From positions 248,001 to 312,000 of the IMG/VR virus record IMGVR_UViG_3300042879_006196: 64,000 bases of DNA. One strand, 5' to 3'. Made by a program: the position numbers and the translations under genes. The first letter of the stretch is position 1. Each line of letters starts with the position of its first letter. Of this stretch, positions 804 through 19,849 are shown piece by piece. Below the pieces are notes generated by a model, which saw only the letters and a program-made list of their open reading frames with translations, did no database searches and was not told the DNA's origin.

Positions 804-1160
804 GTGGCTAATTTATTTTATCGAAACACTAATGCTAAAATTTCTTTTGAAGTTCTTGATGCTAATAATAATTTAGTTGGCTTATCTACTTCAAGAGAGG
901 TATATTGGTATATTTTAACACCTGACAATCAGATTGTGTCAAATGATACAGATATTACCAGTTCTACATTTGCTAATGGCACACCAGTTTACTCTGCCAC
1001 ACCAGTAGTTCAAGAAGAAGAACCAGGCATTTATTACATTAATTATGTGTTGGCAAAGGTAGGTGAGTATAAATATAAATTTCAGGTGATTGACAATCCT
1101 ACATCAACAAATGTAGCTATTTCTGGAAATATAAAAGTAATAACTGACGGAATATTTTAA
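804..1160 (+). CDS. hypothetical beta-rich virion protein
   Basis: 118-aa ORF, GTG start 6 nt after TAATAT; GIYYINY/GEYKYKF strands suggest an Ig-like fold. Confidence 0.5.
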   Translation: MANLFYRNTNAKISFEVLDANNNLVGLSTSREVYWYILTPDNQIVSNDTDITSSTFANGTPVYSATPVVQEEEPGIYYINYVLAKVGEYKYKFQVIDNPTSTNVAISGNIKVITDGIF

Positions 1161-4100
1161 TGGCAAATACTAATAAAAATATATTGATTACTCCTGGTAT
1201 TGGTGGAATTTTATCTTCCTCAATATCACAAATCGATTTTATTTGGTATGAGTCTGGGATAGGCACAAATATTTTTGCTCCGAATATCAATGATCTACGT
1301 TCAACTATATACACTTGGGAACAAAATTCCGAGCCTGTGCTTTTGATTGGTGGTATAGGAACACTAAATAATCAACGAAAATTTGTTGGACCATATCAAG
1401 ATTTTGTTGGCAGTTTCACTGGTATATCAAGTTTTCCTAACATACAATTTTTTCCTTTGTCTGGAAAAATTGTAGGAAACACAATTTCAGTGAGTGGTGT
1501 ATCCACTTTAGCTGGTATATATTTATCAGGTCCTTTATATGATATAAACAACAGAAGTGGATCGTTTGGACAAATATTGTCATCTACCGCATCAGGTGTA
1601 GCCTGGACAAGCATTAGCTATACTGGAATTATTACTGCTATAGGTGGCATCACAAATAGATTAGCGAAATTTTTAGACGAAGATTCTTTAGGAAATAGTT
1701 CAATTATTGATAATGGTACACAAGTTATTTTTGGAGTGGGCGTATCAGTTTTAGGCTTCTCCACTTCTCTTGGGTTTTTTGGACCAGGTACTAATCTTAC
1801 TAATCTGAATGCATCTAATCTTTTCTTTGGCACAGTGCCTAGTTCAGTGGTATCAGGTTCTTATTCAGGCATAACATCTGTCGGAAATCTTTCCAACTTG
1901 TTTGTTACTGGTCTCAGTACATCTCTAGCTTATTTTGGTTTTGGTTCAAATCTTACTAATCTAAATGCATCTAATTTATTCTCTGGAACAGTGCCTAGTT
2001 CAGTGGTATCAGGATCTTATTCAGGTATTACATCTGTTGGTAATTTGTCTAGTTTGTTTGTTACTGGATTAACAACATCCTTCAGCTATTTTGGTTTTGG
2101 TTCAAACCTTACTAATCTAAATGCATCTAATTTATTCTCTGGAACAGTGCCAAGCTCAGTGGTATCAGGATCTTATTCAGGTATTACATCTGTTGGTAAT
2201 TTGTCTAGTTTGTTTGTGACTGGATTAACAACATCCTTCAGCTATTTTGGATTTGGTTCAAACCTTACTAATCTAAATGCATCTAATCTGTTTTCTGGTA
2301 CAGTGCCTTCCGCTCGTATTTCAGGTTCTTACTCAGGTATTACATCTGTTGGTAATTTGTCTAGTTTGTTTGTTACTGGATTAACAACATCCTTCAGCTA
2401 TTTTGGTTTTGGTTCAAACCTAACTAATCTAAATGCATCCAATCTGCTCTCTGGAACAGTGCCTAGTTCAGTGGTATCAGGTTCTTATTCAGGCATTACA
2501 TCTGTTGGTAATTTGTCTAGTTTGTTTGTTACTGGATTAACAACATCCTTCAGCTATTTTGGTTTTGGTTCAAACCTTACTAATCTAAATGCATCTAATT
2601 TATTCTCTGGAACAGTGCCAAGCTCAGTGGTATCAGGATCTTATTCAGGTATTACATCTGTTGGTAATTTGTCTAGTTTGTTTGTGACTGGATTAACAAC
2701 ATCCTTCAGCTATTTTGGATTTGGTTCAAACCTTACTAATCTAAATGCATCTAATCTGTTTTCTGGTACAGTGCCTTCCGCTCGTATTTCAGGTTCTTAC
2801 TCAGGTATTACATCTGTTGGTAATTTGTCTAGTTTGTTTGTTACTGGATTAACAACATCCTTCAGCTATTTTGGTTTTGGTTCAAACCTAACTAATCTAA
2901 ATGCATCCAATCTGCTCTCTGGAACAGTGCCTAGTTCAGTGGTATCAGGTTCTTATTCAGGCATTACATCTGTTGGTAATTTGTCTAGTTTGTTTGTTAC
3001 TGGATTAACAACATCCTTCAGCTATTTTGGATTTGGTTCAAATCTTACTAATCTGAATGCATCTAATCTGTTCTCTGGAACAGTGCCTAGTTCAGTGGTA
3101 TCAGGTTCTTATTCAGGCATTACATCTGTTGGCAATCTATCTAACTTATTTGTGACTGGATTAACAACATCCTTCAGCTATTTTGGATTTGGATCAAACC
3201 TCACTAATCTGAATGCATCCAATCTATTCTCTGGTACGGTGCCTAGCTCAGTGGTATCAGGCTCTTACTCAGGCATAACATCTGTTGGAAATTTGTCTAG
3301 TTTGTTTGTGACTGGATTAACAACATCCTTCAGCTATTTTGGTTTTGGTTCAAACCTAACTAATCTCAATGCATCTAATTTATTCTCTGGAACAGTGCCT
3401 AGTTCAGTGGTATCAGGATCTTACTCAGGTATTACATCTGTTGGAAATTTGTCTAGTTTGTTTGTGACTGGATTAACAACACTTAATAATATAGAAATTG
3501 ATGGTTGGTTAAGAGATTCAAATAACTCAATTGGTTTAAGTGGTCAAATTTTATCTTCTACCTCAAATGGAATTGCGTGGACTTCCATAAGTGCCACTGG
3601 TATTATTACTTCGATAGGAGGATTAACTAATCGTGTTTCAAAATTTGTAGATGAAGATTCTTTAACTAATTCCAATATTACAGACAATGGCTCAGTGGTA
3701 GATGTCAATTCAGTTTTTTCAGTTAGTGGTATTTCTACTTTTGCTAAGGACATAATTGTAAATTTTGTAAATATTGGACTTGGCGAAAATCAAAATATTT
3801 CAAACACTGTTTTTGGAAATCAAGCACTTGTAAATAACACAGGTATCTTTAACGTAGCGATAGGAGCATCTGTTTTAAATGCTAATACCACAGGTTTTTC
3901 AAATGTTGGTCTTGGCTTTAGCGCATTAGCTTTTAACTTATCTGGTTTTGCTAACATTGGTATTGGTGCGAGAGCTTTATCTGGAAATGTATCTGGAAAC
4001 AACAATATTGCAATTGGGCAATTTTCTTTAAGGAGTAATTTAACTGGTGGACAAAACGTAGCAGTAGGAAGGCTTACTTTATTCCAAAACATTTCTGGAA

Positions 4101-7100
4101 ATAACAATTCTGCTTTTGGTGATTTAGCTTTAAGAAACTGGGACGTGTCATCAAATCAAACTGGTATAGGATATCAGGCTTTACAAGGAAATTCTACTGT
4201 TACACTCAATACTGGCGTGTTCAATGTTGCTATTGGCAATATGGCTGGTATGGCTGTCAGTTCTGGATCTTATAATACTTTTGTGGGTTCACAAAGTGGT
4301 GATCAAACAACTACAGGAAGTAACAATACTTTCTTGGGCGGTTTCACAAATGGATTAATTTCTGGTGATTATCAAATTGCTATTGGTCAGTCTGTTGTTG
4401 TTTCTGGCTCCAATCAAGGAGCATGGGGAGGCACAACAAACGTTACTCGGACAAATTTAGGAATTGGAACTTTTAATCCTCTTTCAAGACTTCATGTAGA
4501 AACTCTTGCTGCTGGCAACATGGGGCTTTATATTGCTGGATCTGCATCTCAAACCGCCGATTTAGTAGAAATAAATGCCACAACAAATGGTCAAAATTAT
4601 TTTACAATTACTGGAATTGGCTCTGTTGGTATCTATACATCTTTGCCTTCACAGCAATTTCAAGTGAATGGCAATGCAAGGGTTACAGGTGGAATCTTTG
4701 ACTCAAATAACTTTATAGGTTCAGCTAATCAATTATTGTCATCAACAGGCTCTGGAATTGCGTGGACATCTACAGCAGGAGCAGGAATTGTAACTGGCGC
4801 TGGTGTAGCAACAAGAATTGCTTACTTTAGCGGTCCAAACACTTTAACAAGCAATTCTAATTTTATTATTGATTCCAACGGTAATTTTGGAATTAGCACA
4901 TCAGCTCCAAGAAACAGACTTGAAGTAAGTAGTTCAGCAAGATTCAGCGCAAGTGTTATTTTTTACGGTTCAACCGCAAATGAAGCTTTTGCACTCACAC
5001 AACTATTTGACACCACTTATTTTAACACTAACAACGTATTGAGATTCAGACAAGGAGGGTCCACTGCTGGAGCGATAGCATTCTCTTTTTATGACTTTTT
5101 GCCTAACTTGTTTATGACGTTAGATGGTTCTAATGCACCAAGAGTTGGGATAGGTACGACTGGACCTTTGCAAACGTTGCATGTTGGTGGAAATACATTA
5201 ATATCAGGATTGACAACAGCGTTTAGCTATTTTGGATTTGGTTCAAATCTTACTAATCTGAATGCATCAAATCTATTCTCTGGTACAGTTCCTAGTTCAG
5301 TGGTATCAGGTTCTTACACAGGTATCACTTCTGTTGGCAATTTAACTAATTTAAATGTAATAGGCATTTCAACGGTTACTAATTTTAGAGTATTAAATGG
5401 TTTATATGACTCAAATAATTTAGTTGGATTAGCAAATTCAGTTTTATCTTCAACAGGTTCTGGTGTGCTTTGGGTAGCCCCTGCGAGCGGAGGTCCAGGC
5501 GGTGGTACTATTAATGGCACGATAGAAGCAAATAGAATTGCTTTTGGGGCTGCGAGCAATACTATTACAGGCATTTCTACTTTTGTGTATAGTAACCAAG
5601 GCTTTATTGGCATAAACACTTCAAACCCAAACGCAAACTTAGATGTCCAAGGCACTTTCTTGGCAACAGGAATGTCCACTTTCTTAAATCTTAATGTTTT
5701 AGGTAGACTTTATGACAGAAGCGTTGGGAGTGGTAATACAGGTCAAATTTTAGTATCAACAAATTCTGGAGTAGCTTGGACAACAATTGATGCAATTTTT
5801 TATCAACTTGCAGATTCACAAATAGCATTTGGGCTAGGCAGTGATACCATTTATGGTGTTTCCACTTTTGTTTATAGTGGGGGTAACTTGGGTATTGGCA
5901 CTTCTGCGCCACTGCAGACACTTCATGTTGTCGGCAATGCGTTAATATCAGGTCTCACAACATCTTTAGCTTACTTTGGCTTTGGTTCAAACCTTACTAA
6001 TCTAAATGCATCTAATCTGTTCTCTGGAACAGTGCCAAGTTCAGTGGTGTCAGGTTCTTATGCAGGTATTACATCTGTTGGCAATCTATCTAACTTATTT
6101 GTAACTGGTATTGCTACTCTCGTTAATGCTGAAATAGATGGCTGGCTTAAAGACAGAAGTGGATCTATTGGCACTCTTGGTCAAGTGTTATCATCCACTG
6201 GTTCAGGTGTTGCATGGTCATCTGTTTCATCTATTGGCATTATTACTGGTTCAGGAACCATAAATACTATTGCTAAATTTGGTGCATCTAGCTCTTTAAT
6301 TAATTCAAATATCACTGATAATGGTATTGCTGTTACTGTAAACTCAAGAGTATTTGTCAACGGAATTGGGTCATTCTTGGGTGATATTTTTGTTAATCAA
6401 ATGACTGTTGGTCTAGGAAGTCAACAATCTACTGGTAATGTAGCAATTGGTTTTCAGGCTTTTCAGACAGCTTCTCCTTCTGCTAGTGGCAATGTTGCTG
6501 TTGGCGACAGGGCTATGCAAACTACTTCTAATGCAATTTTTGGAAATGTAGCTATTGGACAATTAGCTCTTGCGGTTAACCAAGCGAACAGAAACATTGC
6601 TATTGGCGCACAGGCTTTAAGCTCAAATACTTCTGGCACTGGAAATATAGCTATTGGTCATCAAGCTTTATCTTTAAGTACTGTTGATTTAGGAAATATT
6701 GCAATCGGCGATAGGGCAATGAGGTTCCTTACTGGAGGAAGTGGAGGAAATAACATTGCAATAGGTGGTGGTGCTAACTTAACTACAGCTGCTGAAACAA
6801 CTTTTGTTGGAGCTACCGCTGGCAATAATTACACCACTCAAGGGCAACACGTTGCAGTTGGGGCGTATGCTTTAGTTGGTGTGTCTACAACTGCTGCAAC
6901 TGGAACTCAAAATACAGCTATCGGATATTCAGTAATGACTGGAATTACAGGTGGCAGTGCAAACGTTGGATTAGGGCACTTTGCGTTAAATGCTCTTACT
7001 TCAGGTAATAGCAACACTGGATTGGGATATTTTGCATTGGTTTCAAATACCACAGGTAGCTTTAATGTGGCAGTGGGCAGAGAAGCGTTAAGATATTACA

Positions 7101-9538
7101 CAACTATAAGCAATCAAACAGCTGTTGGTTATCAAGCTTTGCGTGGTAATTCTGATACTACTTTGAATACTGGCACAAGCAATGTAGCTATTGGTTATCA
7201 GGCTGGTCTTGCTAATTCATCTGGATTTTTAAATACATACTTAGGACACCAAGCTGGTTTAGCCAATGCCAACGGAACTCACAATACTTTTATAGGCGCA
7301 ACTGTTGGATCGGCTTCTACATCTAATCACAACACGATTATTGGGGCGGCTTCATATCAGGCTAACAACTTGGGCGAAGCAAACATTGTTGTTGGTAGCC
7401 TTTCTGCACAACTAAACACTTCTGGCAGCTACAACACAGTTGTAGGATACAATGTGTTTAATAGTAACACTACTGGTGGTAACAATGCGGCGTTTGGCTT
7501 TAATGCATTAGCGTCTAATAATACTGGTGGTCAAAATATTGCGATTGGTAGATTTGCTTTAAGATACTATAATCAATCAAACCAGGTAGCAATAGGTGAC
7601 CAGGCATTACAAGGTAGTAGCACTGTATCCCTCAACACAGGAACACAAAATACTGCAATAGGATATCAAGCAGGTTTTGCAAATACTTCTGGCTCTAACA
7701 ATGTTTTTGTGGGTTATCAGGCAGGCTTAGCAAATACTTCTGGCACAGATAATACTTTTGTTGGAAGTACGTCAGGAAGAGTAAATGATTCTGGGAGCAA
7801 CAATACGGCAGTGGGTTCAGGATCTTTACCAAGTAACACTTCAGGAACTCTAAACTCTGCTTTTGGTGCTACAGCCCTTAACAGTAACTCTACTGGTTCA
7901 CAAAACTCTGCTTTTGGCTATGGAGCTTTAAATGCCACTATATCTGGTTCTAATAATTCCGCTTTTGGATTTAATGCTTTGCAAAATAATATTTTAACAA
8001 GCGGTAATACTGGCATGGGTAGAGATGCATTAAGATATTACGCTAACTCAGACAATCAAACTGCTGTAGGTTTTGGAGCTTTGCGAGGAAATGGTACTGT
8101 AGCCCTCAACACTGGAACCCAAAATACTGCTATGGGCTATCAGGCTGGTATAGCAAATACCTCTGGCTCTAACAACGTATTTGTCGGTTATCAGGCAGGC
8201 TTAGCAAATACTTCTGGGAGCAACAATACAGCCGTCGGCAATCAATCTTTAGCAAATAACTCAGTTGGTATTCAAAATGTAGCTGTTGGAAGTTTTGCAT
8301 TATTCTATAATTTAAATGGTAATTATAACATTGCTATAGGGCAAGATACTTTAAGAAATTATGAAACACAAGGTTTGCAAATAGCTATTGGGTATAGAGC
8401 TTTAAGAGGAAGTGACACAAGATCTTCTAACACAGGGTTTTCTAACGTTGCTGTAGGAAGAGAAACTTTAAGCATAAATACGTCTGGCTCTAACAACACT
8501 GCTCTTGGAACGTTAGCAGGTACTGTTAATAATAATGGTAATCAAAATACTTTTGTTGGAGCACAAAGTGGGGACGGAAATACTTCAGGGTCTTCAAACA
8601 CATATCTCGGTTATCTCACAGATGGAGCCCCTTCAGGCAACTATCAAATTGCAGTGGGTGATAGTGTAACGCTTACTGCATCCAATCTTGGTGCATGGGG
8701 TGGTAATACTAACTCCACTCGCACTGACCTTGGTATTGGTACTTTTACGCCACTAGCTCGTTTACATGTTGAAACATTAGCCGCTGGAAACATGGGCTTG
8801 TATATTGCAGGATCTGTATCACAAACTGGCGACTTAGTAGAGGTAAATGCCACGGCAAATGGTCAAAACTATTTCACGATTACTGGAATTGGCTCTGTTG
8901 GTATTTATACTTCATTACCTGCACAAGCCTTAGATGTAAGAGGCAATCAGATTGTGTCTGGTATATCAACAGCGTTTAGTTTCTTCGGTTTTGGTTCAAA
9001 CCTTACTAATTTAAATGCATCTAGTCTGTTCTCAGGAACAGTGCCAAGTTCAGTGGTATCAGGATCTTACTCAGGAATAACATCTGTTGGAACATTATCA
9101 CAATTGAGTGTTTCAGGATTTTCTACTTTAAAGAATTTTGAATCTAGTGGTCAATTTAATTTTTATGGAACTTCAAACCTTGATAACCAAAGAGTGTTTA
9201 CTGGAGCATCTTCTTCAATTAATCAAACTACATTTGTAGGCATGACTTCTATTGCAGTTCCTGTTGGTTATCAATTAACAATTGAAGGTAAAATCAATGG
9301 ATGGTTCAATGAAAGTTTCAATGAAAGCGGTAGATTCTTCGCTGTATTTAATAACTCAATTGGAATTGTTTCTATAATTGGTCAGCCAGACATTACATCT
9401 AAATTTGTTGGATCAAGTGGTAATTTTGACATACAAGCCCAAGGACCCAATGTTGTTATTGTTACTAAATCTAACGCATCTTCCAATATGTGGCTATGGA
9501 AAACATCTTATGATTACTTACTTACACAAAATGTATAA
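1160..9538 (+). CDS. giant tail fibre / adhesin-like protein (2792 aa) with 52-aa tandem repeats and YadA-head-like N(T/V)A(V/I)G repeats
   Basis: G/S/T/N-rich ORF; many NTAVG/NVAIG beta-roll repeats and GIGTxxP...LHV.G fibre motifs; tail-module context. Confidence 0.75.
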   Translation: MANTNKNILITPGIGGILSSSISQIDFIWYESGIGTNIFAPNINDLRSTIYTWEQNSEPVLLIGGIGTLNNQRKFVGPYQDFVGSFTGISSFPNIQFFPLSGKIVGNTISVSGVSTLAGIYLSGPLYDINNRSGSFGQILSSTASGVAWTSISYTGIITAIGGITNRLAKFLDEDSLGNSSIIDNGTQVIFGVGVSVLGFSTSLGFFGPGTNLTNLNASNLFFGTVPSSVVSGSYSGITSVGNLSNLFVTGLSTSLAYFGFGSNLTNLNASNLFSGTVPSSVVSGSYSGITSVGNLSSLFVTGLTTSFSYFGFGSNLTNLNASNLFSGTVPSSVVSGSYSGITSVGNLSSLFVTGLTTSFSYFGFGSNLTNLNASNLFSGTVPSARISGSYSGITSVGNLSSLFVTGLTTSFSYFGFGSNLTNLNASNLLSGTVPSSVVSGSYSGITSVGNLSSLFVTGLTTSFSYFGFGSNLTNLNASNLFSGTVPSSVVSGSYSGITSVGNLSSLFVTGLTTSFSYFGFGSNLTNLNASNLFSGTVPSARISGSYSGITSVGNLSSLFVTGLTTSFSYFGFGSNLTNLNASNLLSGTVPSSVVSGSYSGITSVGNLSSLFVTGLTTSFSYFGFGSNLTNLNASNLFSGTVPSSVVSGSYSGITSVGNLSNLFVTGLTTSFSYFGFGSNLTNLNASNLFSGTVPSSVVSGSYSGITSVGNLSSLFVTGLTTSFSYFGFGSNLTNLNASNLFSGTVPSSVVSGSYSGITSVGNLSSLFVTGLTTLNNIEIDGWLRDSNNSIGLSGQILSSTSNGIAWTSISATGIITSIGGLTNRVSKFVDEDSLTNSNITDNGSVVDVNSVFSVSGISTFAKDIIVNFVNIGLGENQNISNTVFGNQALVNNTGIFNVAIGASVLNANTTGFSNVGLGFSALAFNLSGFANIGIGARALSGNVSGNNNIAIGQFSLRSNLTGGQNVAVGRLTLFQNISGNNNSAFGDLALRNWDVSSNQTGIGYQALQGNSTVTLNTGVFNVAIGNMAGMAVSSGSYNTFVGSQSGDQTTTGSNNTFLGGFTNGLISGDYQIAIGQSVVVSGSNQGAWGGTTNVTRTNLGIGTFNPLSRLHVETLAAGNMGLYIAGSASQTADLVEINATTNGQNYFTITGIGSVGIYTSLPSQQFQVNGNARVTGGIFDSNNFIGSANQLLSSTGSGIAWTSTAGAGIVTGAGVATRIAYFSGPNTLTSNSNFIIDSNGNFGISTSAPRNRLEVSSSARFSASVIFYGSTANEAFALTQLFDTTYFNTNNVLRFRQGGSTAGAIAFSFYDFLPNLFMTLDGSNAPRVGIGTTGPLQTLHVGGNTLISGLTTAFSYFGFGSNLTNLNASNLFSGTVPSSVVSGSYTGITSVGNLTNLNVIGISTVTNFRVLNGLYDSNNLVGLANSVLSSTGSGVLWVAPASGGPGGGTINGTIEANRIAFGAASNTITGISTFVYSNQGFIGINTSNPNANLDVQGTFLATGMSTFLNLNVLGRLYDRSVGSGNTGQILVSTNSGVAWTTIDAIFYQLADSQIAFGLGSDTIYGVSTFVYSGGNLGIGTSAPLQTLHVVGNALISGLTTSLAYFGFGSNLTNLNASNLFSGTVPSSVVSGSYAGITSVGNLSNLFVTGIATLVNAEIDGWLKDRSGSIGTLGQVLSSTGSGVAWSSVSSIGIITGSGTINTIAKFGASSSLINSNITDNGIAVTVNSRVFVNGIGSFLGDIFVNQMTVGLGSQQSTGNVAIGFQAFQTASPSASGNVAVGDRAMQTTSNAIFGNVAIGQLALAVNQANRNIAIGAQALSSNTSGTGNIAIGHQALSLSTVDLGNIAIGDRAMRFLTGGSGGNNIAIGGGANLTTAAETTFVGATAGNNYTTQGQHVAVGAYALVGVSTTAATGTQNTAIGYSVMTGITGGSANVGLGHFALNALTSGNSNTGLGYFALVSNTTGSFNVAVGREALRYYTTISNQTAVGYQALRGNSDTTLNTGTSNVAIGYQAGLANSSGFLNTYLGHQAGLANANGTHNTFIGATVGSASTSNHNTIIGAASYQANNLGEANIVVGSLSAQLNTSGSYNTVVGYNVFNSNTTGGNNAAFGFNALASNNTGGQNIAIGRFALRYYNQSNQVAIGDQALQGSSTVSLNTGTQNTAIGYQAGFANTSGSNNVFVGYQAGLANTSGTDNTFVGSTSGRVNDSGSNNTAVGSGSLPSNTSGTLNSAFGATALNSNSTGSQNSAFGYGALNATISGSNNSAFGFNALQNNILTSGNTGMGRDALRYYANSDNQTAVGFGALRGNGTVALNTGTQNTAMGYQAGIANTSGSNNVFVGYQAGLANTSGSNNTAVGNQSLANNSVGIQNVAVGSFALFYNLNGNYNIAIGQDTLRNYETQGLQIAIGYRALRGSDTRSSNTGFSNVAVGRETLSINTSGSNNTALGTLAGTVNNNGNQNTFVGAQSGDGNTSGSSNTYLGYLTDGAPSGNYQIAVGDSVTLTASNLGAWGGNTNSTRTDLGIGTFTPLARLHVETLAAGNMGLYIAGSVSQTGDLVEVNATANGQNYFTITGIGSVGIYTSLPAQALDVRGNQIVSGISTAFSFFGFGSNLTNLNASSLFSGTVPSSVVSGSYSGITSVGTLSQLSVSGFSTLKNFESSGQFNFYGTSNLDNQRVFTGASSSINQTTFVGMTSIAVPVGYQLTIEGKINGWFNESFNESGRFFAVFNNSIGIVSIIGQPDITSKFVGSSGNFDIQAQGPNVVIVTKSNASSNMWLWKTSYDYLLTQNV
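1787..3480 (+). repeat. 11 tandem copies of a 156-bp (52-aa) coding repeat
   Basis: Units start at 1787, 1943, 2099, 2255, 2411, 2567, 2723, 2879, 3035, 3191, 3347; consensus GSNLTNLNASNLFSGTVPSSVVSGSYSGITSVGNLSSLFVTGLTTSFSYFGF. Confidence 0.95.
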
Positions 9539-9568: not shown

Positions 9569-10288
9569 ATGGCATACTTTCTTGGTCCTGTTTCAGTAAC
9601 AAGCAACTTGTTATACTACTACGACGCCGCAAATCAATTTAGCTACCCCCAATCTGGTAGCACATGGAGAGATTTAAGTGGTTTATCTAATAATGCCACT
9701 TTATCAGGAACAGGATTTTCTACAGATTTCCAAGGTGCAATTACAATGCCAGCTGGCTCTGAAACTATTGTACTTAATGACAATACTTCTATATCAGCTG
9801 CATTCCCCTCAAGTAGCTTTACAATAATAATAGCTGTCAGAGCAAAAGATCAAGCAAGCCCAAGAAGTGCTCTGCCTATGTGGATTCAAGCATCAAACCC
9901 AGTTGCTGCGGCAATCAATAAAGGTTGGCAGGTTGGTGAGGGTGCAAGCTTAAGCGCAATAAATGTTGAAGTAAGTGATGGAGTAAATTATTCTACGATT
10001 GCTTTATCTCATGGTGTGGCACAGACAACTACATATCATAGAGCTTTTGTAGTTGATAGGACAAATGGATGTACAACAAACTATTTTGTTAATGGCGTGT
10101 TGGTTGGAATTGCATCAACTTCAGCTGTAACGGGGACTATATATACTTCAGGTGGTTTTACATTTGGAAACACAGCTGGATGGAGATTTGTGGGAGACAT
10201 TTATATGATACAAGTTTATAGCAGAGCTTTATCTACATCTGAAGTACAACAAAATTTTGCAGCTGTAAGGAGCAGGCTTGGTATATGA
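9569..10288 (+). CDS. LamG / concanavalin A-like lectin domain virion protein
   Basis: YYDAAN..SYP.SGSTWRDLSG N-terminus and F.GDI..IQVYSRALS.SEVQQNF C-terminus; GGAGG upstream. Confidence 0.75.
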   Translation: MAYFLGPVSVTSNLLYYYDAANQFSYPQSGSTWRDLSGLSNNATLSGTGFSTDFQGAITMPAGSETIVLNDNTSISAAFPSSSFTIIIAVRAKDQASPRSALPMWIQASNPVAAAINKGWQVGEGASLSAINVEVSDGVNYSTIALSHGVAQTTTYHRAFVVDRTNGCTTNYFVNGVLVGIASTSAVTGTIYTSGGFTFGNTAGWRFVGDIYMIQVYSRALSTSEVQQNFAAVRSRLGI

Positions 10289-11637
10289 GTGCTACTGGTG
10301 GACCTTCTATAAGCACAAGAAATCTTATCTTAAACTATGATCCAAGTAACTTTTTTTCATATAATGGTGTAGGTAACACTATTAACGACTTGTCTAGATC
10401 AAGTTTTTCTGGTGCATTGAATAATATTGTTTTCTCACAACAAAATCAAGGCATATTATCTTTTAATGGGTCTTCTTCTTTCATAACTGGAAATACTGGA
10501 TTTGGAACAATTTTAAATTCAGGTAATTACTCTGTGAATGCCTGGGTTTTTTTAAGCTCTTTAAGCACTGCTTCAATTTTCAATAACTTTTGCGTGGGTA
10601 TAGGTTCCACCTTTCTTGTGCCTTCAGTTTCTCAAAATGCTGGGCAAGCAGGCTCAGTTGCAGGAACTCTTACGCCAGGTTCGATTATTGTGGGCATGTC
10701 TGGCATAATTTCCACTTTACCAAATGTTTCATTATCAACAGTTTTTGATAATAGAAATGGAAATATTTATTCTATTACTGGTGGATTAACACAGCAAATT
10801 GTAGGTATTGATGCCATTAATAGGTTTTGTACTTTTTATCATTGGTATGGGGTTAATACATCTAGCGCCACAGGTTTGACTGTTAACTTTCAATACACTG
10901 GTGGTACTCCAACAATAAATTATAATAACTTTGTGGAAGTAATAAATTGTGATACAAAACCTGGTTTTGTAGAAAGTAGTGTTTCTGTGAATTATTTTGG
11001 GGCAGGTGCCACTAACACTCCGCTTTTTGCTTCAACTCGAATAAGGGATTTTGTTTACACTTCAAATTTTGGTAGATTTAACATCACTCCAACTTCGGGA
11101 ACTTTAAGTGGAAATTTGCAATTCACATCAGCGTTTGGAGGTAATGGTACTTATGGTTTATCTGCTAATTATGCGGTTCAAAACCCTATAGGATTTAACA
11201 GTGTTTATTATGCTGGCGGCTTAGGTGCCACTGGTTTTATTGGCGCAACTATAATAAAATCTTTAAATCCATACCGAGATGGAACACAAAACGCTGGAAT
11301 GGTTATAAATAATGGTGTAATTGCTTCAAGAACTACTACGCAAATTTACAACACCACACAATCTGTTTCAGTATCTAGATGGAATAATGTTTGCATTGTT
11401 TATTCTGGAATAGGTGCATCCACATATTTAAATGGCAATCTTGTGTCTACTCAAGATGCAGCTAAATTAGTTGCTTCAGTAGGGGTTACTAGTTTTGTCA
11501 TTGGTTCTAATGGTGTAACTACAAATTCTGAAGTATTAAATGGTAACATTGGATATATTGGAATTTACAACACAAACCTCACACAATCTGAAGTTACAAA
11601 CAATTTTAATGCTTTAGTGAGCAGGTTCATAGCTTAG
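10285..11637 (+). CDS. LamG-like virion protein with a large central insertion
   Basis: LNYDPSN..SY.G.G.T.NDLS start and WNNVCIVY..YLNG..NG.IG.I.IYN..LT.SEV.NNF end, separated by about 250 aa of unrelated beta-rich sequence. Confidence 0.65.
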   Translation: MSATGGPSISTRNLILNYDPSNFFSYNGVGNTINDLSRSSFSGALNNIVFSQQNQGILSFNGSSSFITGNTGFGTILNSGNYSVNAWVFLSSLSTASIFNNFCVGIGSTFLVPSVSQNAGQAGSVAGTLTPGSIIVGMSGIISTLPNVSLSTVFDNRNGNIYSITGGLTQQIVGIDAINRFCTFYHWYGVNTSSATGLTVNFQYTGGTPTINYNNFVEVINCDTKPGFVESSVSVNYFGAGATNTPLFASTRIRDFVYTSNFGRFNITPTSGTLSGNLQFTSAFGGNGTYGLSANYAVQNPIGFNSVYYAGGLGATGFIGATIIKSLNPYRDGTQNAGMVINNGVIASRTTTQIYNTTQSVSVSRWNNVCIVYSGIGASTYLNGNLVSTQDAAKLVASVGVTSFVIGSNGVTTNSEVLNGNIGYIGIYNTNLTQSEVTNNFNALVSRFIA

Positions 11638-11676: not shown

Positions 11677-14600
11677 ATGAGAATTTATAACGATTCAATA
11701 GAAAATGCAGTGGGGATAAGCTCATCTCAGTATGGGCTTTATGTTGGGTCTGGATATACATTTTTTACACCTCCTGTAAATGGTTTAATTATTCAAGGCT
11801 CTGTAGGAATTGCAACTTCAAGTCCAACACAAGCACTACACGTTTCTGGGTCTGCAAGAATTACAGGTGCAATTTATGATTCAAATAACGCCACAGGTTC
11901 TTTGAATCAAGTTTTAACATCTACTGGAGTTGGTATAACTTGGGCTACTGTAAGTTCAACAGGTGGGGTGTCTGGCTCTGGAACAACAAACACTGTTGCT
12001 AAATTTAATTCTTCAAGCTCTTTATCTAACTCAAACATCACAGATAATGGAATTGCAGTAACAGTAAATTCTCGCATTTTTGTTAATGGTTTTGGTTCTT
12101 TTTTAGGTGATTTGTTCGTTAATCTCATAACTGTTGGGAGAGGTGGTGGATCAAATACGCTTAATACTGTTGTAGGTTTTCAAGCTGGTCTTGCAAATAC
12201 GTCTGGTTCTAATAATACTTTTATTGGATATCAAGCTGGATTAGCTAATACTTCAGGATCAAACAACACTGCTCTTGGAGCTTCAGCCTTATTCAGTAAT
12301 AACACAGGTGCGTCTAATGTTGCTATAGGCTACAATGCTTTATATGCTACAACGTATGGTGCAAGAAATGTAACTGTAGGTTTTGAAGCTGGATATCAAA
12401 TTGTTAGTGCAAATGACAACACTTATATGGGTTACAGAGTTGGATATGCCAATACAAATGGTTCAGGAAATTCTGCATTTGGAATTAACGCCTTAAATTC
12501 AGCTACCACTCCTTTCTTCAACACAGCTATAGGTAGGCAGTCACTTTATTCTACTACAACTGGGGGCGACAATACAGCTGTTGGGAATAATGCTGGTTTT
12601 ACTAATACAACTGGAACATATAATGTCTACATTGGGGCTGGAGCTGGACAATATCAAACACAATCTTTTCTCACAGCAATTGGTGGAGTGGCGCTTAGAG
12701 GAAATGTTGACACAACTTTAAATACTGGGACTTTAAATGTTGCTGTTGGGTACGCTGCTGGAACTGCAAATACTTCAGGTAGTAGCAACACTTTTATTGG
12801 TCACACTGCAGGGGCAAACAACAGTACAGGAAATACAAATACTTTTGTAGGAAACTATGCTGGTTCAGCTAACACATCGGGTTCAAATAATAATTTTTTT
12901 GGTGCGAATACTGGAGCTAACAATTCCACAGGCACTGGAAACGTTGCTATGGGAATTTCTGCTTTCAATCAAAACAGGCATGGGATAAATAATGTTGCTA
13001 TTGGCAGACAAGCTTTCTATTATAATGTTTCAGGAAGTAGTAATGTTGCAGTGGGCAACAACGCTTTATTTTACTATGAATCTTCTTCAAGCAATACGGC
13101 TGTTGGAGACGCTGCGCTCTTAGGTAATTCTACCACTTCTTTAAACACTGCCTCAGGCAACGTGGCTTTGGGTGCTTCTGCAGGCATAGCTAATTCTTCT
13201 GGATCATTTAACGTATATATTGGCAATTCTGCTGGAAGCACAGTAACTACAGGCAATAATAATGTTTTTGTTGGTAATCAGTCAAATGGAATTGCGGCTG
13301 GCAGTAACCAAATAGCTATTGGTCAAGGCGTAATTATTACAGCATCTAACCAAGGAGCATGGGGTGGAAGCACTAATTCTACTCGAACTAACCTTGGTAT
13401 AGGTACTTTTTCACCTTTAGCGAGATTACACATTGAGACTTTAGCTGCAGCAAATATGGGTTTGTATATTGCTGGTTCTGCATCTCAGACTGGAGACTTG
13501 GTAGAAGTAAATGCCACTGCAAATGGTGCAAATTATTTCACAATAACAGGAATTGGCTCTGTGGGCATTTACACTGCTACCCCGACACAACAATTACATG
13601 TTTCTGGTAATGTCAGAATAAATGGTGGAATCTTTGATTCTAACAACAACATAGGTTTAGCAAACTCTGTTTTAAGCTCTACAGGCACAGGTTTAGCTTG
13701 GATTGCTCAGTCTGCTGCAGCTGCAGGCAGTGGAACAATTGGCGGCTCAATATCTACGAACCAAATTGCTTTTGGCAACACTTTAAATGTAATCACTGGT
13801 ATTTCAACTTTTGTTTATTCAAATAATCGTGTTGGTATTGGCACTGCTGTTCCTTTGTCTATTCTTCACACACGATCTGGTTTTGCTAATTCTTCAGCAT
13901 TGAGGGTAGATGGTATTTCTGGCAATCTTTTTGAAGTCACAGATATTCTAACAGGTAACTTGCAGTCTGTAAACAATATTTCTGGTTTACCTGTTTTTCA
14001 AGTTTTTGATGGTGTAAATAACCCATTGGTTGCAGTAAAAACTCCAGTGGGTCTCGCTTCTGAAGCATTCTCTGTTACATCACCTCTTAATTTTCCTTAT
14101 TTCAGTGTGAGCGGTTTAGGAAGCGTGGGTATTGGAACTTCCACCCCTTCAAGAACTATGCATGTTCAAGGAAATATGCGTGTTACAGGCGTGTTTGCCG
14201 ATACATTCAATGCTGCTGGTGCATCTAACAATTTATTACAATCTACAGGATCTGGAACTGCTTGGTCTTCCTTTGTTCAACTAGGTTTAGTTACAGGTGC
14301 AAGTGCTGGTTCTAGAATTGCTTTTTATGCTACTCCAAACTCTTTGATTGGTGTATCTACCTTCGTTTACACAGGTATAGGCTCTGTTGGAATAGGAACA
14401 GCTAACCCCACGCAACTATTACATGTCACTGGTATTGGTAGATTTGACCAAATTACATTGGGACCAACAGCCACTCCTGTTTCTGGATATCCACTTTCTC
14501 TATTTGGTAATTTTTATTTAAGAGCAAATGATGTTATTTCATGGTCAGCTGGAAATGCAAGTATTGTATCAGCAAGTGGTGTTTTTGATTTAAGATTCAG

Positions 14601-15381
14601 AACATATAACGGCTCTACTGCTGAGTTTGAGCATATGAGAATTTTGTCTAATGGAAATGTTGGCATCGGAACTACTGGACCTTTAGCAAAACTACATGTT
14701 CAAAGCTCTAATGTCGCTAATATACCATTAATTCTTTCAGGTTTTGGAATACAAACTGCTGATTATTTGAGAATTGAATCGCAAGTCAATGGAACAAGAT
14801 TAATTACAATTGATTCAACAGGAGAATTAGGTATTGGAACATCCACTCCTACTCAAACTCTGCATGTGCAAGCAGGATCTAGGTTTAATGGAGCAATTTT
14901 TGACACTAATAATCTTTCTGGTGGTCCGATTGGTATTGTAAGCCAAGTATTGCAATCAACTGGAACAGGTGTGACGTGGGCTCCAGTAAAAAGATCATTA
15001 ATCATACCATTGATGACAGCATTTACACCCACTGCTTCTGGAATTGATGCAGGTGTATTTATTGTACCACAAGATCCTATTAATGGTATTTCATCTGTAA
15101 ACTATAACTTACGAAGGGTTAATGTGCGAGTTGAAACTCCAGCAACAGGAATCACTACAATAAATGTATCTAAATCCACAAGTCCTGGCGTGTTCTCTGG
15201 TGCGAATATTTTATCTTCAGATATTCTTGTTACAGGTGCTTCTAATTATGAATTCGCATCTAGCTCCTTTACTGGATTTGGAGCAACAGCAACAAGTAAC
15301 GATAAATTTGCAGTGAACTTTATAGGGACAGCACCAACATTTGCTAACTTTACAGTGGAATTAATATTGAGAGAAGCATGA
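11677..15381 (+). CDS. second tail fibre / adhesin-like protein (1234 aa)
   Basis: Shares NTAVG repeats and whole modules (SNITDNGIAVTVNSR; WGG.TN.TRT.LGIGTF.PL.RLH.ETLAA.NMGLYIAGS) with the 2792-aa protein. Confidence 0.75.
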   Translation: MRIYNDSIENAVGISSSQYGLYVGSGYTFFTPPVNGLIIQGSVGIATSSPTQALHVSGSARITGAIYDSNNATGSLNQVLTSTGVGITWATVSSTGGVSGSGTTNTVAKFNSSSSLSNSNITDNGIAVTVNSRIFVNGFGSFLGDLFVNLITVGRGGGSNTLNTVVGFQAGLANTSGSNNTFIGYQAGLANTSGSNNTALGASALFSNNTGASNVAIGYNALYATTYGARNVTVGFEAGYQIVSANDNTYMGYRVGYANTNGSGNSAFGINALNSATTPFFNTAIGRQSLYSTTTGGDNTAVGNNAGFTNTTGTYNVYIGAGAGQYQTQSFLTAIGGVALRGNVDTTLNTGTLNVAVGYAAGTANTSGSSNTFIGHTAGANNSTGNTNTFVGNYAGSANTSGSNNNFFGANTGANNSTGTGNVAMGISAFNQNRHGINNVAIGRQAFYYNVSGSSNVAVGNNALFYYESSSSNTAVGDAALLGNSTTSLNTASGNVALGASAGIANSSGSFNVYIGNSAGSTVTTGNNNVFVGNQSNGIAAGSNQIAIGQGVIITASNQGAWGGSTNSTRTNLGIGTFSPLARLHIETLAAANMGLYIAGSASQTGDLVEVNATANGANYFTITGIGSVGIYTATPTQQLHVSGNVRINGGIFDSNNNIGLANSVLSSTGTGLAWIAQSAAAAGSGTIGGSISTNQIAFGNTLNVITGISTFVYSNNRVGIGTAVPLSILHTRSGFANSSALRVDGISGNLFEVTDILTGNLQSVNNISGLPVFQVFDGVNNPLVAVKTPVGLASEAFSVTSPLNFPYFSVSGLGSVGIGTSTPSRTMHVQGNMRVTGVFADTFNAAGASNNLLQSTGSGTAWSSFVQLGLVTGASAGSRIAFYATPNSLIGVSTFVYTGIGSVGIGTANPTQLLHVTGIGRFDQITLGPTATPVSGYPLSLFGNFYLRANDVISWSAGNASIVSASGVFDLRFRTYNGSTAEFEHMRILSNGNVGIGTTGPLAKLHVQSSNVANIPLILSGFGIQTADYLRIESQVNGTRLITIDSTGELGIGTSTPTQTLHVQAGSRFNGAIFDTNNLSGGPIGIVSQVLQSTGTGVTWAPVKRSLIIPLMTAFTPTASGIDAGVFIVPQDPINGISSVNYNLRRVNVRVETPATGITTINVSKSTSPGVFSGANILSSDILVTGASNYEFASSSFTGFGATATSNDKFAVNFIGTAPTFANFTVELILREA

Positions 15382-15872
15382 AATTAGAAAAACAAAAAAG
15401 AAATGATTTTGATATTTGGTTGAATGAAAATGGTGCAATTTATTCAATTATTCCAGTACCTAAAAATCTATGTTATCATTTTTGCTTACCTGAAACATTT
15501 TATCAAACAATCTTACAATTGGGATCATGTGGAAACTCACTGAGATATTTAATTAAACAAAAATACCCCGACACAATTTTAACAGATGTGGATGTAGAAG
15601 ATTACTCAGAATATTCCGATAATTTTATCCAAGACGATGCATATTCATTTATAAAAACCACTGTAATTGAATATGATTATTCAATTGTTGATTTAGCTAC
15701 CACAGATGATGTTTGTGATTTTATTACTGAATTAGATTTTCAATTAAATTTGAAAAGAATCAGCAAGCAAGGAGTGATAAATTGTGGGAGTAATTACAAA
15801 GATTTTTCTTTATTAAAATGTACAAAAAAAATAAAAGCAGAGGGTAATCACCTTTACTTTTGGGAGAGATAA
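15378..15872 (+). CDS. class I SAM-binding / spermidine-synthase-like protein (degenerate)
   Basis: LQLGSCG motif I-like, DVDVE acidic strand and DAYSFIK....YDYSIVDL resemble the spermidine synthase core. Confidence 0.4.
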   Translation: MKLEKQKRNDFDIWLNENGAIYSIIPVPKNLCYHFCLPETFYQTILQLGSCGNSLRYLIKQKYPDTILTDVDVEDYSEYSDNFIQDDAYSFIKTTVIEYDYSIVDLATTDDVCDFITELDFQLNLKRISKQGVINCGSNYKDFSLLKCTKKIKAEGNHLYFWER

Positions 15873-16826
15873 ATGGCAACAGCAGGACCTAATTATTCTG
15901 GAGCGGTGGCAAATGATGCTTCTATTGGCACAGTTGCATGGGTCAACCCTACAAATGCTCAAGGTAATCAAACAACAGTTTATGCTTATGTTGACCTTCT
16001 AAATGCGGGTGTTGTAGAGCTATCGATTAAATTAATTAAAGGTGGTGTTATATCTGGAACAGACAAATCTACTGGCGCAACAATACCTACAACTCTCACC
16101 ACGGTAAATTACGGAAGTGCTTCTGATTTATGGGGTCTGACATTCACTCCCACCGATATTAATTCATCAAATTTTGGCGTGGTATTTGCCTCACAGGAAC
16201 CCTTAGCACCAACAGAATCAAATTATCTTTCTGCAACTAATTTTGGATTTTCTATTCCTGCTGGTTCGACAATAAATGGAATATCATGTTCTATAACGCA
16301 GTTAGCGGCAAATGCAGCTTCTTTTGCTGAAGGCACACAAATTCAAACACAATCTGGAATTAAAAACATAGAAGAAATAACAAAAGATGATTTAGTTTTA
16401 AGTTTTAATAAAAATACAAAAAAATGCTCTTACAAAAAAGTAAAAGACGTAGTTTGCACAACAGTGCATGAATATTTAATCATCAACGAAAAAATAATCA
16501 CAACTTTTAATCACTTATTTTTTACTACAAGAGGCTGGGTTCAGGCGGCAGAACTAAAAAAAGATGATTACTTATGGAAACGAAAAAACAATAAGTGGTG
16601 CAAAGAAAAAATTAAGAAAATACAAACTGAAAAGCAAACTATTAATGTTTATAATTTTGAAGTAGAAGAAAACAACACTTACTTTGCTAATGATTTTGCT
16701 GTGCATAATGTGATTCTTGTGAACAGATATGTAAGAGTGTATAATTTTGGAATATCTGTAGACTATACAGCCTCAGGCGGAGGAGGAGTACAAAGAAGAA
16801 GAGTGATAGCTACTTCCCTTGATTAG
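15873..16826 (+). CDS. virion-type beta-sandwich protein interrupted by a Hint (intein-like) domain
   Basis: N-part with YGSASDLWG and SNYLSATNFGFSIP; Hint domain at residues 150-279; short beta-rich C-terminal part. Confidence 0.7.
   Translation: MATAGPNYSGAVANDASIGTVAWVNPTNAQGNQTTVYAYVDLLNAGVVELSIKLIKGGVISGTDKSTGATIPTTLTTVNYGSASDLWGLTFTPTDINSSNFGVVFASQEPLAPTESNYLSATNFGFSIPAGSTINGISCSITQLAANAASFAEGTQIQTQSGIKNIEEITKDDLVLSFNKNTKKCSYKKVKDVVCTTVHEYLIINEKIITTFNHLFFTTRGWVQAAELKKDDYLWKRKNNKWCKEKIKKIQTEKQTINVYNFEVEENNTYFANDFAVHNVILVNRYVRVYNFGISVDYTASGGGGVQRRRVIATSLD
16320..16709 (+). other. 130-aa Hint / mini-intein-like domain
   Basis: Block A SFAEGTQI, block B TFNHLF (TxxH), block F/G VYNFEVEENNTYFANDFAVHN; the +1 residue is Val. 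Confidence 0.85.
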
Positions 16827-17028
16827 AATTTTTAATTTTATTCTTAGATTGTGTTTTAATGTTTTTACCCATGTCTTCATTTGGAATTGTATCAACTACT
16901 TCAATCCCTTCTATTTTGTCTAAAAAAGCCATAAGCTCTAAACATTCAGAACCAGATGTTCCCTTTGGTGTAACGAGAATTTTACCCTTTTCATCAATCT
17001 CAATAACTAATTCCACTTTCTTGCTCAT
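16810..17028 (-). CDS. DUF2997-like small protein
   Basis: IEIDEKGKILV..KG.SGSECLE matches the recalled I..DG.V..EV.G..G..C pattern; adjacent to a DUF1257-like gene. Confidence 0.6.
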   Translation of the reverse strand: MSKKVELVIEIDEKGKILVTPKGTSGSECLELMAFLDKIEGIEVVDTIPNEDMGKNIKTQSKNKIKNSNQGK

Positions 17029-17423
17029 ATGATTTTACCTGCTGTAATTGTAATTGATTTGTCTGTATTTTTTACTTCAGCGCTGACAGTAAATTTATTC
17101 TTTTTTAATGCTGATTTGATTGCTGTCAAAGCGTAAGATTGTGTAACTTTATCTGCCACACCTTTGTGAGAATCATAATCAGAACAAATCATAATATATT
17201 CTTTAGAACTATCATCAAAAGAAAATCCTAAATCATTTGAAGCTAAAGAAATTTGTTTTCGTGGAACAATGATTTCAGCTTTTTCTTCTCTTGTGTCGTT
17301 CATGTAACCTTGAAGATTATGTTTTTCTTTATAAACTACAGGTTCATAACCTAAACTCTTTAAGCTCTCAATGAGAGTGGAGTGATCTTTGAATGAACAT
17401 TTAATTGTTTTATATGCTGACAT
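17025..17423 (-). CDS. DUF1257 / Ycf35-like protein
   Basis: MS.Y.TIK..FKD...L..SL..LGY..AEI.V..NDLGF......Y.MI.SDYD pattern. Confidence 0.7.
   Translation of the reverse strand: MSAYKTIKCSFKDHSTLIESLKSLGYEPVVYKEKHNLQGYMNDTREEKAEIIVPRKQISLASNDLGFSFDDSSKEYIMICSDYDSHKGVADKVTQSYALTAIKSALKKNKFTVSAEVKNTDKSITITAGKII

Positions 17424-18226: not shown

Positions 18227-19849
<1,623 letters not shown>

Follow-up and report, generated by a model that had tools for sequence, protein, structure and literature searches.

A bacterial-intein-like Hint domain within a phage host fold of probable tail or fibre function: identity, placement and possible self-excision

The window analysed here, 64,000 nucleotides (nt) of the IMG/VR virus record IMGVR_UViG_3300042879_006196 (positions 248,001 to 312,000), stems from a 347-kb lake-water phage of a freshwater jumbo phage lineage; the record comprises 347,392 bp, is estimated to be 99% complete, and the window is AT-rich with ~31% GC. 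Its gene P0001 encodes a precursor of 317 amino acids (aa), in which a mini-Hint domain of the A-type bacterial-intein-like (BIL) kind interrupts a β-sandwich domain of phage proteins immediately before its last strand. Based on the residues conserved in this domain we propose, with a probability of roughly 0.55, that it excises itself by an N–O acyl shift at Ser150 and cyclisation of Asn279, whereby the flanking host halves, the N- and C-exteins, would either be rejoined or left nicked. The features concerned are listed below; codon readout reproduced exactly the reading frame and the positions of Ser150, the TxxH motif, His278-Asn279 and Val280 that had been given in an original prediction on this DNA.

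15873..16826, + strand: precursor gene P0001, 317 aa, stop codon included
15873..16319, + strand: N-extein, aa 1–149, most of the ~190-aa β-sandwich host domain (homologues; strands 2–146 of the AlphaFold2 (AF2) model)
16320..16709, + strand: mini-Hint of the A-type BIL / PT-HINT kind, aa 150–279, 130 aa, without endonuclease (Pfam, PDB sequence search, Foldseek, NCBIfam)
16320..16322, + strand: Ser150 (TCT), position 1 of the Hint (codon readout, alignment)
16503..16514, + strand: block B TFNH, Thr211 to His214 (codon readout, alignment)
16647..16664, + strand: start of block F, VYNFEV, aa 259–264, with Asn as third residue of VYNF (same VYNF in 2LWY)
16704..16709, + strand: His278-Asn279, C-terminal dipeptide in block G (invariant in all relatives)
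16710..16712, + strand: Val280 (GTG), the +1 residue, not a nucleophile (codon readout, relatives)
16710..16823, + strand: C-extein, aa 280–317, with short loop, last host β-strand, Gly-rich linker and basic tail (VQRRRV...) (alignment, AF2)
16728..16769, + strand: final host β-strand, aa 286–299, predicted local distance difference test (pLDDT) score ~97 (AF2; follows strand 133–146)

Identity of the Hint domain and its place in the host fold

Among the Pfam models PT-HINT (PF07591) fits the insert best (E = 2.2e-15; 57.6 bits against a cut-off, the gathering score of this model, of 27.7) and places it at residues ~150–283. The Pfam model Intein_splicing matches as well (E = 2.2e-9) and the NCBIfam model intein_Cterm exceeds its cut-off at residues 259–279, while the Pfam models Hint_2 and Hint stay under their cut-offs for the 317-aa protein. 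Chance is no plausible source of a Hint assignment at this level. No endonuclease family of Pfam matches within this protein, and the 130-aa Hint carries neither an endonuclease nor a remnant of one. The original prediction had described a mini-Hint with Ser1, an intact TxxH, a terminal His-Asn, Val at +1 and no endonuclease, and had named classification by hidden Markov models as one check; the description agrees with codon readout and with the profile matches, led by PT-HINT.

In a sequence search of the PDB the closest solved relative is the C. thermocellum BIL 2LWY (E = 4.4e-13; best intein 5e-8), with which the window protein has in common an initial SF/AF-x-GT, the block B motif TTF-H and the block F motif VYNF. 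The AF2 model of the precursor (mean pLDDT 89.8) leads Foldseek to Tetrahymena BUBL BIL2 (6Y75, 8.9e-10) as top match and to 2LWY (1.4e-9, root-mean-square deviation 1.9 Å over 139 columns) as second, both with TM-scores of 0.80–0.85 by target; these two are the only two solved BILs. Mini-inteins rank after them and Hedgehog domains later still, the margins of the BILs over the inteins being modest. The expected Hint fold is thus recovered in the model, and the resemblance to A-type BILs suggested beforehand reappears in the nearest solved relatives and in the clade-wide lack of a +1 nucleophile (see below). Within the phage database the nearest Hints belong to toxin-like proteins of Ruminococcus phages, and in a translated member (H1) Ala and a C-terminal domain come after the HN; the same database also yields inteins in ribonucleotide reductase genes from Campylobacter phages. 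No other Hint or intein was found in the whole 347-kb genome.

On these sequence features we assign the insert to the A-type BIL (PT-HINT) mini-Hints. It contains blocks A, B, F and G, a position 1 held by Ser or Cys and a His-Asn terminus, has no +1 nucleophile and is nearer to BILs than to inteins. A class 1 intein would present Cys, Ser or Thr at +1 for transesterification, where Val280 is found, and either a sporadic presence and absence among close alleles or a homing endonuclease, neither of which was seen. A PT-HINT toxin would carry a toxin domain after the Hint, whereas here 38 aa follow, which equal the last strand of the host family plus a tail; the invariant His-Asn sets the domain apart from B-type BILs, which lack this dipeptide in block G, and from Hedgehog Hog domains, which have a sterol-recognition region and undergo no reaction at the C-terminus. 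A C-terminal boundary at the second Asn (VILVN) was considered as well and rejected, this motif not being conserved among the relatives.

The architecture around the insert becomes apparent from the Hint-less members of the host family. A word search with the N-extein by itself retrieved 149 homologues, mostly of 165–260 aa and none with a Pfam domain, and the family is abundant, with >250 matches. In its Hint-less members the segment ...INGIxVxIEx is linked by a short, variable loop to the last strand, which is conserved as (V/I)D(H/Y)IxITVxYT and whose counterpart in the window protein, FGISVDYT, aligns downstream of the Hint. The AF2 model of the precursor shows the host strands within residues 2–146, the Hint at 150–279, a low-confidence linker at 280–285 and strand 286–299 back in the host sandwich; in that of the natural Hint-less homologue P0005 (mean pLDDT 91.4) strands 135–147 and 154–167 are joined by a 6-residue loop. 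As modelled, the Hint is located at the tip of the last β-hairpin of the host fold, in a variable loop inside one folded domain of a phage protein, and the C-extein supplies the conserved final strand. Hint removal would leave a 9-residue loop (NAA + VILVNR). It had been supposed that deletion of the Hint joins the final host strands, and indeed the alignment with Hint-less homologues runs across the junction, with the C-extein corresponding to the last strand of the family.

A low-confidence remark in the original prediction, according to which the DLWG and ATNFGFSIP segments of the host domain stand in reversed order, turned out to touch a real property of the family, as both orders occur. 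A two-strand cassette of ~35 residues, SHYLKATNFGFSIPxGATINGIxV, follows either the N-terminal ~40 residues or directly precedes the last strand. By motif count among 166 retrieved proteins it lies before KLVKGG...DLWG in ~106 and after it in ~46, the window protein included; alignments of P0006, P0009, P0012, P0020 and P0150 display the two arrangements. Because the N-terminus and the last strand are fixed, this corresponds to an internal segment transposition and not to a circular permutation. P0150 is cassette-first and Hint-bearing, and its Hint is still found directly before the last strand.

Neither Pfam nor PHROGs contains the host domain, and a Foldseek comparison of its model with PDB structures yielded no hit at E ≤ 0.001, while the matches in BFVD are uncharacterised phage proteins only. 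VIA-align relates it over ~100 residues to CBM32, F5/8 type C and fucolectin domains with Z = 5.0–6.0, a range (Z < 8) that may reflect a common arrangement alone. In the ESM Atlas it falls among clusters of ~200 aa mostly from tailed phages, together with domains of secreted Bacteroidota proteins and SPP1 Dit-like tail proteins. It forms the C-terminal ~190 aa of a 1001-aa open reading frame (ORF; L002/L028) and lies inside an ORF of >2134 aa (L026), placements as expected of a distal fibre module, and in two phage records it is found under the annotation 'tail tubular protein A'. We therefore regard the host domain as a probable accessory module of the tail or fibre apparatus that would bind glycans or receptors. 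Its earlier designation as virion-type is supported by the gene context and by the position at the end of long fibre-like proteins, and is to be understood as a statement drawn from these two and not from proteomics.

Conservation and inheritance of the insert

A word search with the full-length protein revealed 19 more proteins, from 99% to 28% identical, that have a Hint at this site, and all but one of the resulting 20 match PT-HINT. Of these 20, 16 begin the Hint with Ser and 4 with Cys; all except P0149, which has lost it, retain TxxH, and the terminal tripeptide VHN is invariant in the alignment. The +1 residue is V (10) or A (5), and once each G, L, F, P (in P0137) and T; the T belongs to P0134, a protein with Cys1. 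Nine additional metagenome loci (L015–L023), which may partly encode members of protein clusters already counted, carry the Hint at the same site as well, all with Ser1, TxxH and HN followed by A or V; the HN is accordingly invariant in the 20 proteins and the nine loci.

One relative, P0002 (193 aa), appeared at first sight as a split or broken allele, since its 46.9-kb contig encodes 193 aa and 101 aa in the same frame, implying an in-frame stop inside the Hint. It is not a split intein, because a 239.5-kb contig (L015:3001-3945) with the first 193 aa identical is intact at 314 aa; P0002 is a nonsense variant or an assembly error. As a separate observation, the contig of the Hint-less P0004 also encodes an independent 198-aa protein with a PT-HINT match (L013:5203-5799).

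In the close clade of 11 members the mean identity amounts to 77% in the N-extein, 59% in the Hint and 76% in the C-extein, and there are no frame breaks. The divergences of Hint and exteins are correlated (r = 0.88 over all pairs, 0.55 among distant pairs), and in no pair does the similarity of the Hints greatly exceed that of the exteins. The GC content at third codon positions (GC3) is equal in Hint and exteins (0.21–0.24); the lower overall GC of the Hint (27% vs 40% in the exteins) is due to first and second codon positions, that is, to a composition rich in Lys, Asn and Ile. Taken together, co-divergence, equal GC3 and conserved residues indicate an old resident under purifying selection and neither a decaying nor a recently arrived element.

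The search for alleles without the insert, which the original prediction had put forward as a check, agrees with this picture. None exists in the close clade, where all relatives above ~60% extein identity carry the Hint, Hint-less homologues being only more distant. No joint skipping the Hint was present in the contigs of three lake-water metagenome runs, in which the gene is spanned without differences, although this is weak evidence as contigs drop rare variants; in a fourth lake-water run a more distant strain likewise bridges the N-junction. A related-locus search of viral contigs returned no locus at all with P0001 and only distant, Hint-less ones with P0002. In a quick maximum-likelihood tree of the host domain, calculated with the Hint removed and poorly resolved, the Hint-bearing rows group together, none of 500 shuffles giving a value as low; 8 changes are needed, of which well-supported branches force at least 2, and P0149 and P0150 stand apart. 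Judged from these sequence comparisons the Hint is fixed, vertically inherited and selectively maintained, and is not a mobile intein.

The adjacent Cpn60 chaperonin gene has a different kind of insert in one close relative (L007:7357-9960), where it encodes 867 aa with LAGLIDADG_3 and Hom_end matches between two Cpn60 halves and appears to harbour a canonical mobile intein. The Cpn60 gene of the window (18230-19849, 539 aa) is without an insert, in contrast to the fixed Hint.

Self-excision and its alternatives

In the proposed reaction Ser150, aided by Thr211 and His214, would transform the Ala149–Ser150 peptide bond into an ester by an N–O acyl shift, and Asn279, aided by His278, would cyclise and thereby cut the Asn279–Val280 bond. 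A branched intermediate would not arise because Cys, Ser and Thr are absent from +1. Instead, the freed α-amine of Val280, held beside the ester by the hairpin, might attack the latter, which would correspond to splicing by aminolysis and yield a product of 187 aa; with water as the attacking species, pieces of 149 and 38 aa would be formed and stay together as a nicked sandwich. Along both routes the 130-aa Hint would leave and the host domain would be completed by its own last strand. As the C-extein (aa 280–317) lacks both Lys and Cys, the α-amine of Val280 would be the sole internal nucleophile, and since the strand in the C-extein is conserved, a simple disposal of the C-terminal peptide is disfavoured. 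The present data show what the domain is, where it begins and ends, which catalytic residues are conserved, that a +1 nucleophile is lacking throughout the clade and where the insert lies in the structure; that the chemistry runs at all, and in which ratio splicing and cleavage would occur, we infer.

This scenario has counterparts in the literature. BILs, having no +1 nucleophile, cannot arrive at the branched intermediate (PMC4031507; PMC7664689), and the route proposed for A-type BILs consists of thioester formation at position 1, Asn cyclisation and attack of the freed amine onto the thioester, with cleavage products usually dominant (PMC4031507). One mutation can make BILs efficient splicers (PMC4031507; PMC7664689).

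Several observations weigh against self-excision, or at least against its splicing branch. Position 1 is Ser in most members, so that the intermediate would be an oxyester, and the Val at +1 is β-branched. Oxyesters are attacked by amines far less readily than thioesters. Ligation would thus be less favourable than in Cys1 BILs, and cleavage may dominate. In addition, the block F His is variable among the relatives and replaced by Asn in the window protein; AF2 folds the precursor with the Hint as a loop excursion, so that excision is not structurally required; and P0149 has retained its Hint despite the loss of the block-B His, which means that an unprocessed insert may be tolerated. The last two points lead over to a reading in which the Hint is a non-reacting former intein or BIL, retained as an additional domain at the tip of the hairpin, where it may have been co-opted for binding or as a spacer, and the mature protein has 317 aa. 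The predicted host sandwich is complete with the Hint attached, the adjacent Hint termini render a loop insertion sterically harmless, and the loop at the insertion site is variable anyway. However, over the whole span of 28–99% identity position 1 stays Ser or Cys and His-Asn does not vary, although the remainder of the Hint falls to 23–58%, and TxxH persists in 19 of the 20 proteins; a purely structural role would not account for catalytic residues held so exactly. We consider an unprocessed insert unlikely, though the likeliest of the alternatives.

If the residues do react, they might do so only, or mainly, at the C-terminal junction in the style of pretoxin Hints, with Asn279 cyclisation freeing the 38-aa peptide as a maturation or activation step. 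The invariant His-Asn, PT-HINT as best Pfam match and the toxin-like protein of a Ruminococcus phage, whose HN precedes Ala and a C-terminal domain, are in line with such a function. The freed peptide, however, would be no cargo domain but the last strand and tail of a fold that is one chain in Hint-less members; in the close clade it is as well conserved as the N-extein, and a conserved position-1 nucleophile and TxxH would be unnecessary for this cleavage, which we accordingly rate as decidedly improbable. Doubts are stronger still about an intermolecular ligation, by which the ester at Ser150 would be resolved by an amine or hydroxyl group of a virion protein, of the adjacent 164-aa protein or of a glycan and the N-extein would become covalently attached. 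BUBL BIL2, the top structural match, forms isopeptide bonds to Lys residues of other proteins (PMC8616854), the C-extein offers no Lys, and the gene resides among fibre genes beside a strictly co-conserved 164-aa partner. Yet the transferred N-extein would be without the last strand of its fold, and neither the invariant His-Asn nor the conserved C-extein is needed for transfer to a third party. Finally, a canonical class 1 intein that recently lost its +1 nucleophile, and hence a dying selfish element, is highly improbable. The Intein_splicing and intein_Cterm models match, the insertion lies inside a folded domain as in inteins, and the Cpn60 gene of a close relative bears a LAGLIDADG intein; but the +1 nucleophile is absent in 19 of 20 proteins and in all nine extra loci, down to 28% identity, no endonuclease or remnant is left, the close clade and the contigs of the three lake runs hold no Hint-less allele, and Hint and exteins co-diverge.

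Self-excision with either outcome remains the reading we prefer. A bolder reading appears quite unlikely: either an efficient hairpin-templated splicing free of Cys and of a +1 nucleophile, in which the Ser1 oxyester is resolved by the Val+1 amine, or an assembly-triggered switch, in which the ester is captured by another virion component and a receptor-binding module becomes covalently fixed to the fibre.

Genomic setting and comparison with known systems

The Hint gene closes a block of + strand genes and is met from the opposite side by a convergent gene pair:

1160-9538, + strand: 2792-aa ORF, no Pfam match
9569-11637, + strand: two Laminin_G_3 (concanavalin-like) proteins, matching long virion structural proteins of PHROGs
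11677..15381, + strand: 1234-aa repeat protein, PHROG matches to virion structural, tail spike and tail fibre proteins
15378..15872, + strand: 164-aa gene abutting the start codon of the Hint gene, directly upstream in every close relative examined
16810-17423, − strand: DUF2997-like 72-aa gene and DUF1257 132-aa gene, converging on the Hint gene

The 2792-aa ORF and the Laminin_G_3 proteins probably belong to a large apparatus, either fibre or baseplate, and the 1234-aa repeat protein, through its sequence matches, defines a structural (tail-fibre) context for the Hint gene. The 72-aa DUF2997-like ORF overlaps the 3′ end of the Hint gene by 17 nt. All close relatives examined maintain the order of the 164-aa gene, the Hint gene, the DUF2997/DUF1257 pair on the opposite strand and the Cpn60 chaperonin gene. 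At two distant Hint-bearing loci (L011:5416-5991 and L012:5411-5995) the directly upstream gene encodes an S-adenosylmethionine-dependent methyltransferase of ~190 aa, the two being 41% identical to each other; the 164-aa upstream protein has no similarity to them. Methyltransferases, glycosyltransferases and a collagen-like protein are encoded nearby at the Hint-less locus L014. Positions 15300-17100 of the window were recovered at 99–100% of sampled words in 18 lake-water metagenome runs from 2020–2024, and the phage thus persists in the freshwater lake; no RNA run holding this segment was found.

BIL domains are known from bacterial secreted proteins, from polymorphic toxins and from a ciliate ubiquitin-like locus. 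In open-access text we found no published description of a BIL fixed inside a virion-module protein of a phage. As the Hint is flanked by two halves of one fold, its processing would have a direct structural consequence and an easy readout (spliced, nicked or unprocessed), and a natural panel of at least 20 variants, in which position 1 is Ser or Cys, +1 is V, A, G, L, F, P or T and block B is either present or lost, provides a natural test case for protein splicing or cleavage free of a +1 nucleophile. If splicing occurs, the domain would be a traceless ligation element without Cys, Ser or Thr at the junction, which is wanted by protein engineers; if it cleaves only, self-nicking would join the known maturation steps of phage fibre proteins. 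Efficient nucleophile-free splicing or an ester-capture switch, were one of them true, would be a kind of Hint reaction without a described precedent in phage particles. Independently of the Hint, the host family is uncharacterised and abundant, and unusual in that a two-strand cassette of 35 residues has changed place in a non-circular manner.

The closest parallel is BIL4 of C. thermocellum (2LWY), an A-type BIL (Amitai 2003, Dassa 2004 and Aranko 2013, as cited in PMC4031507). Both are mini-Hints with a position-1 nucleophile, TxxH, His-Asn and VYNF, without Cys, Ser or Thr at +1 and without an endonuclease, and neither is mobile. They differ in the host, which is a phage virion-module protein in the present case and a secreted or variable bacterial protein in that of A-type BILs, and in the placement, since the phage Hint is situated, in an intein-like manner, inside a single folded domain that is completed by the C-extein. 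A-type BILs are typically found in variable regions of bacterial proteins that are non-essential and often secreted. Moreover, the phage Hints mostly have Ser and not Cys at position 1 and occupy one site conserved over a wide clade. With the pretoxin Hints (PF07591) our domain shares the best Pfam model, and the nearest Hint in the phage database, with its HN followed by Ala, is a protein of this type; unlike in pretoxin Hints, the phage Hint is followed by no toxin or cargo but just by 38 residues of the host fold.

BUBL BIL2 (6Y75/6TMM) is the top Foldseek match (8.9e-10, TM-score 0.80 by target) and has no +1 nucleophile either. It moves its N-extein to the ε-amine of a Lys, forming an isopeptide bond (PMC8616854). 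BUBL relies on Cys1 and on a Lys of a ubiquitin-like domain within a polyubiquitin-like locus, whereas the phage protein has Ser1 and a C-extein free of Lys. Class 1 mini-inteins such as Spl DnaX, gp41-1 and Ssp DnaB correspond to the phage Hint in the fold, in blocks A, B, F and G, in the insertion into a folded domain and in the existence of Hint-less host homologues. In contrast to them, all but one of the phage relatives lack the +1 nucleophile, which makes the defining transesterification impossible, close relatives show neither mobility nor empty and occupied alleles, and the phage insertion site is a variable loop instead of a conserved functional site.

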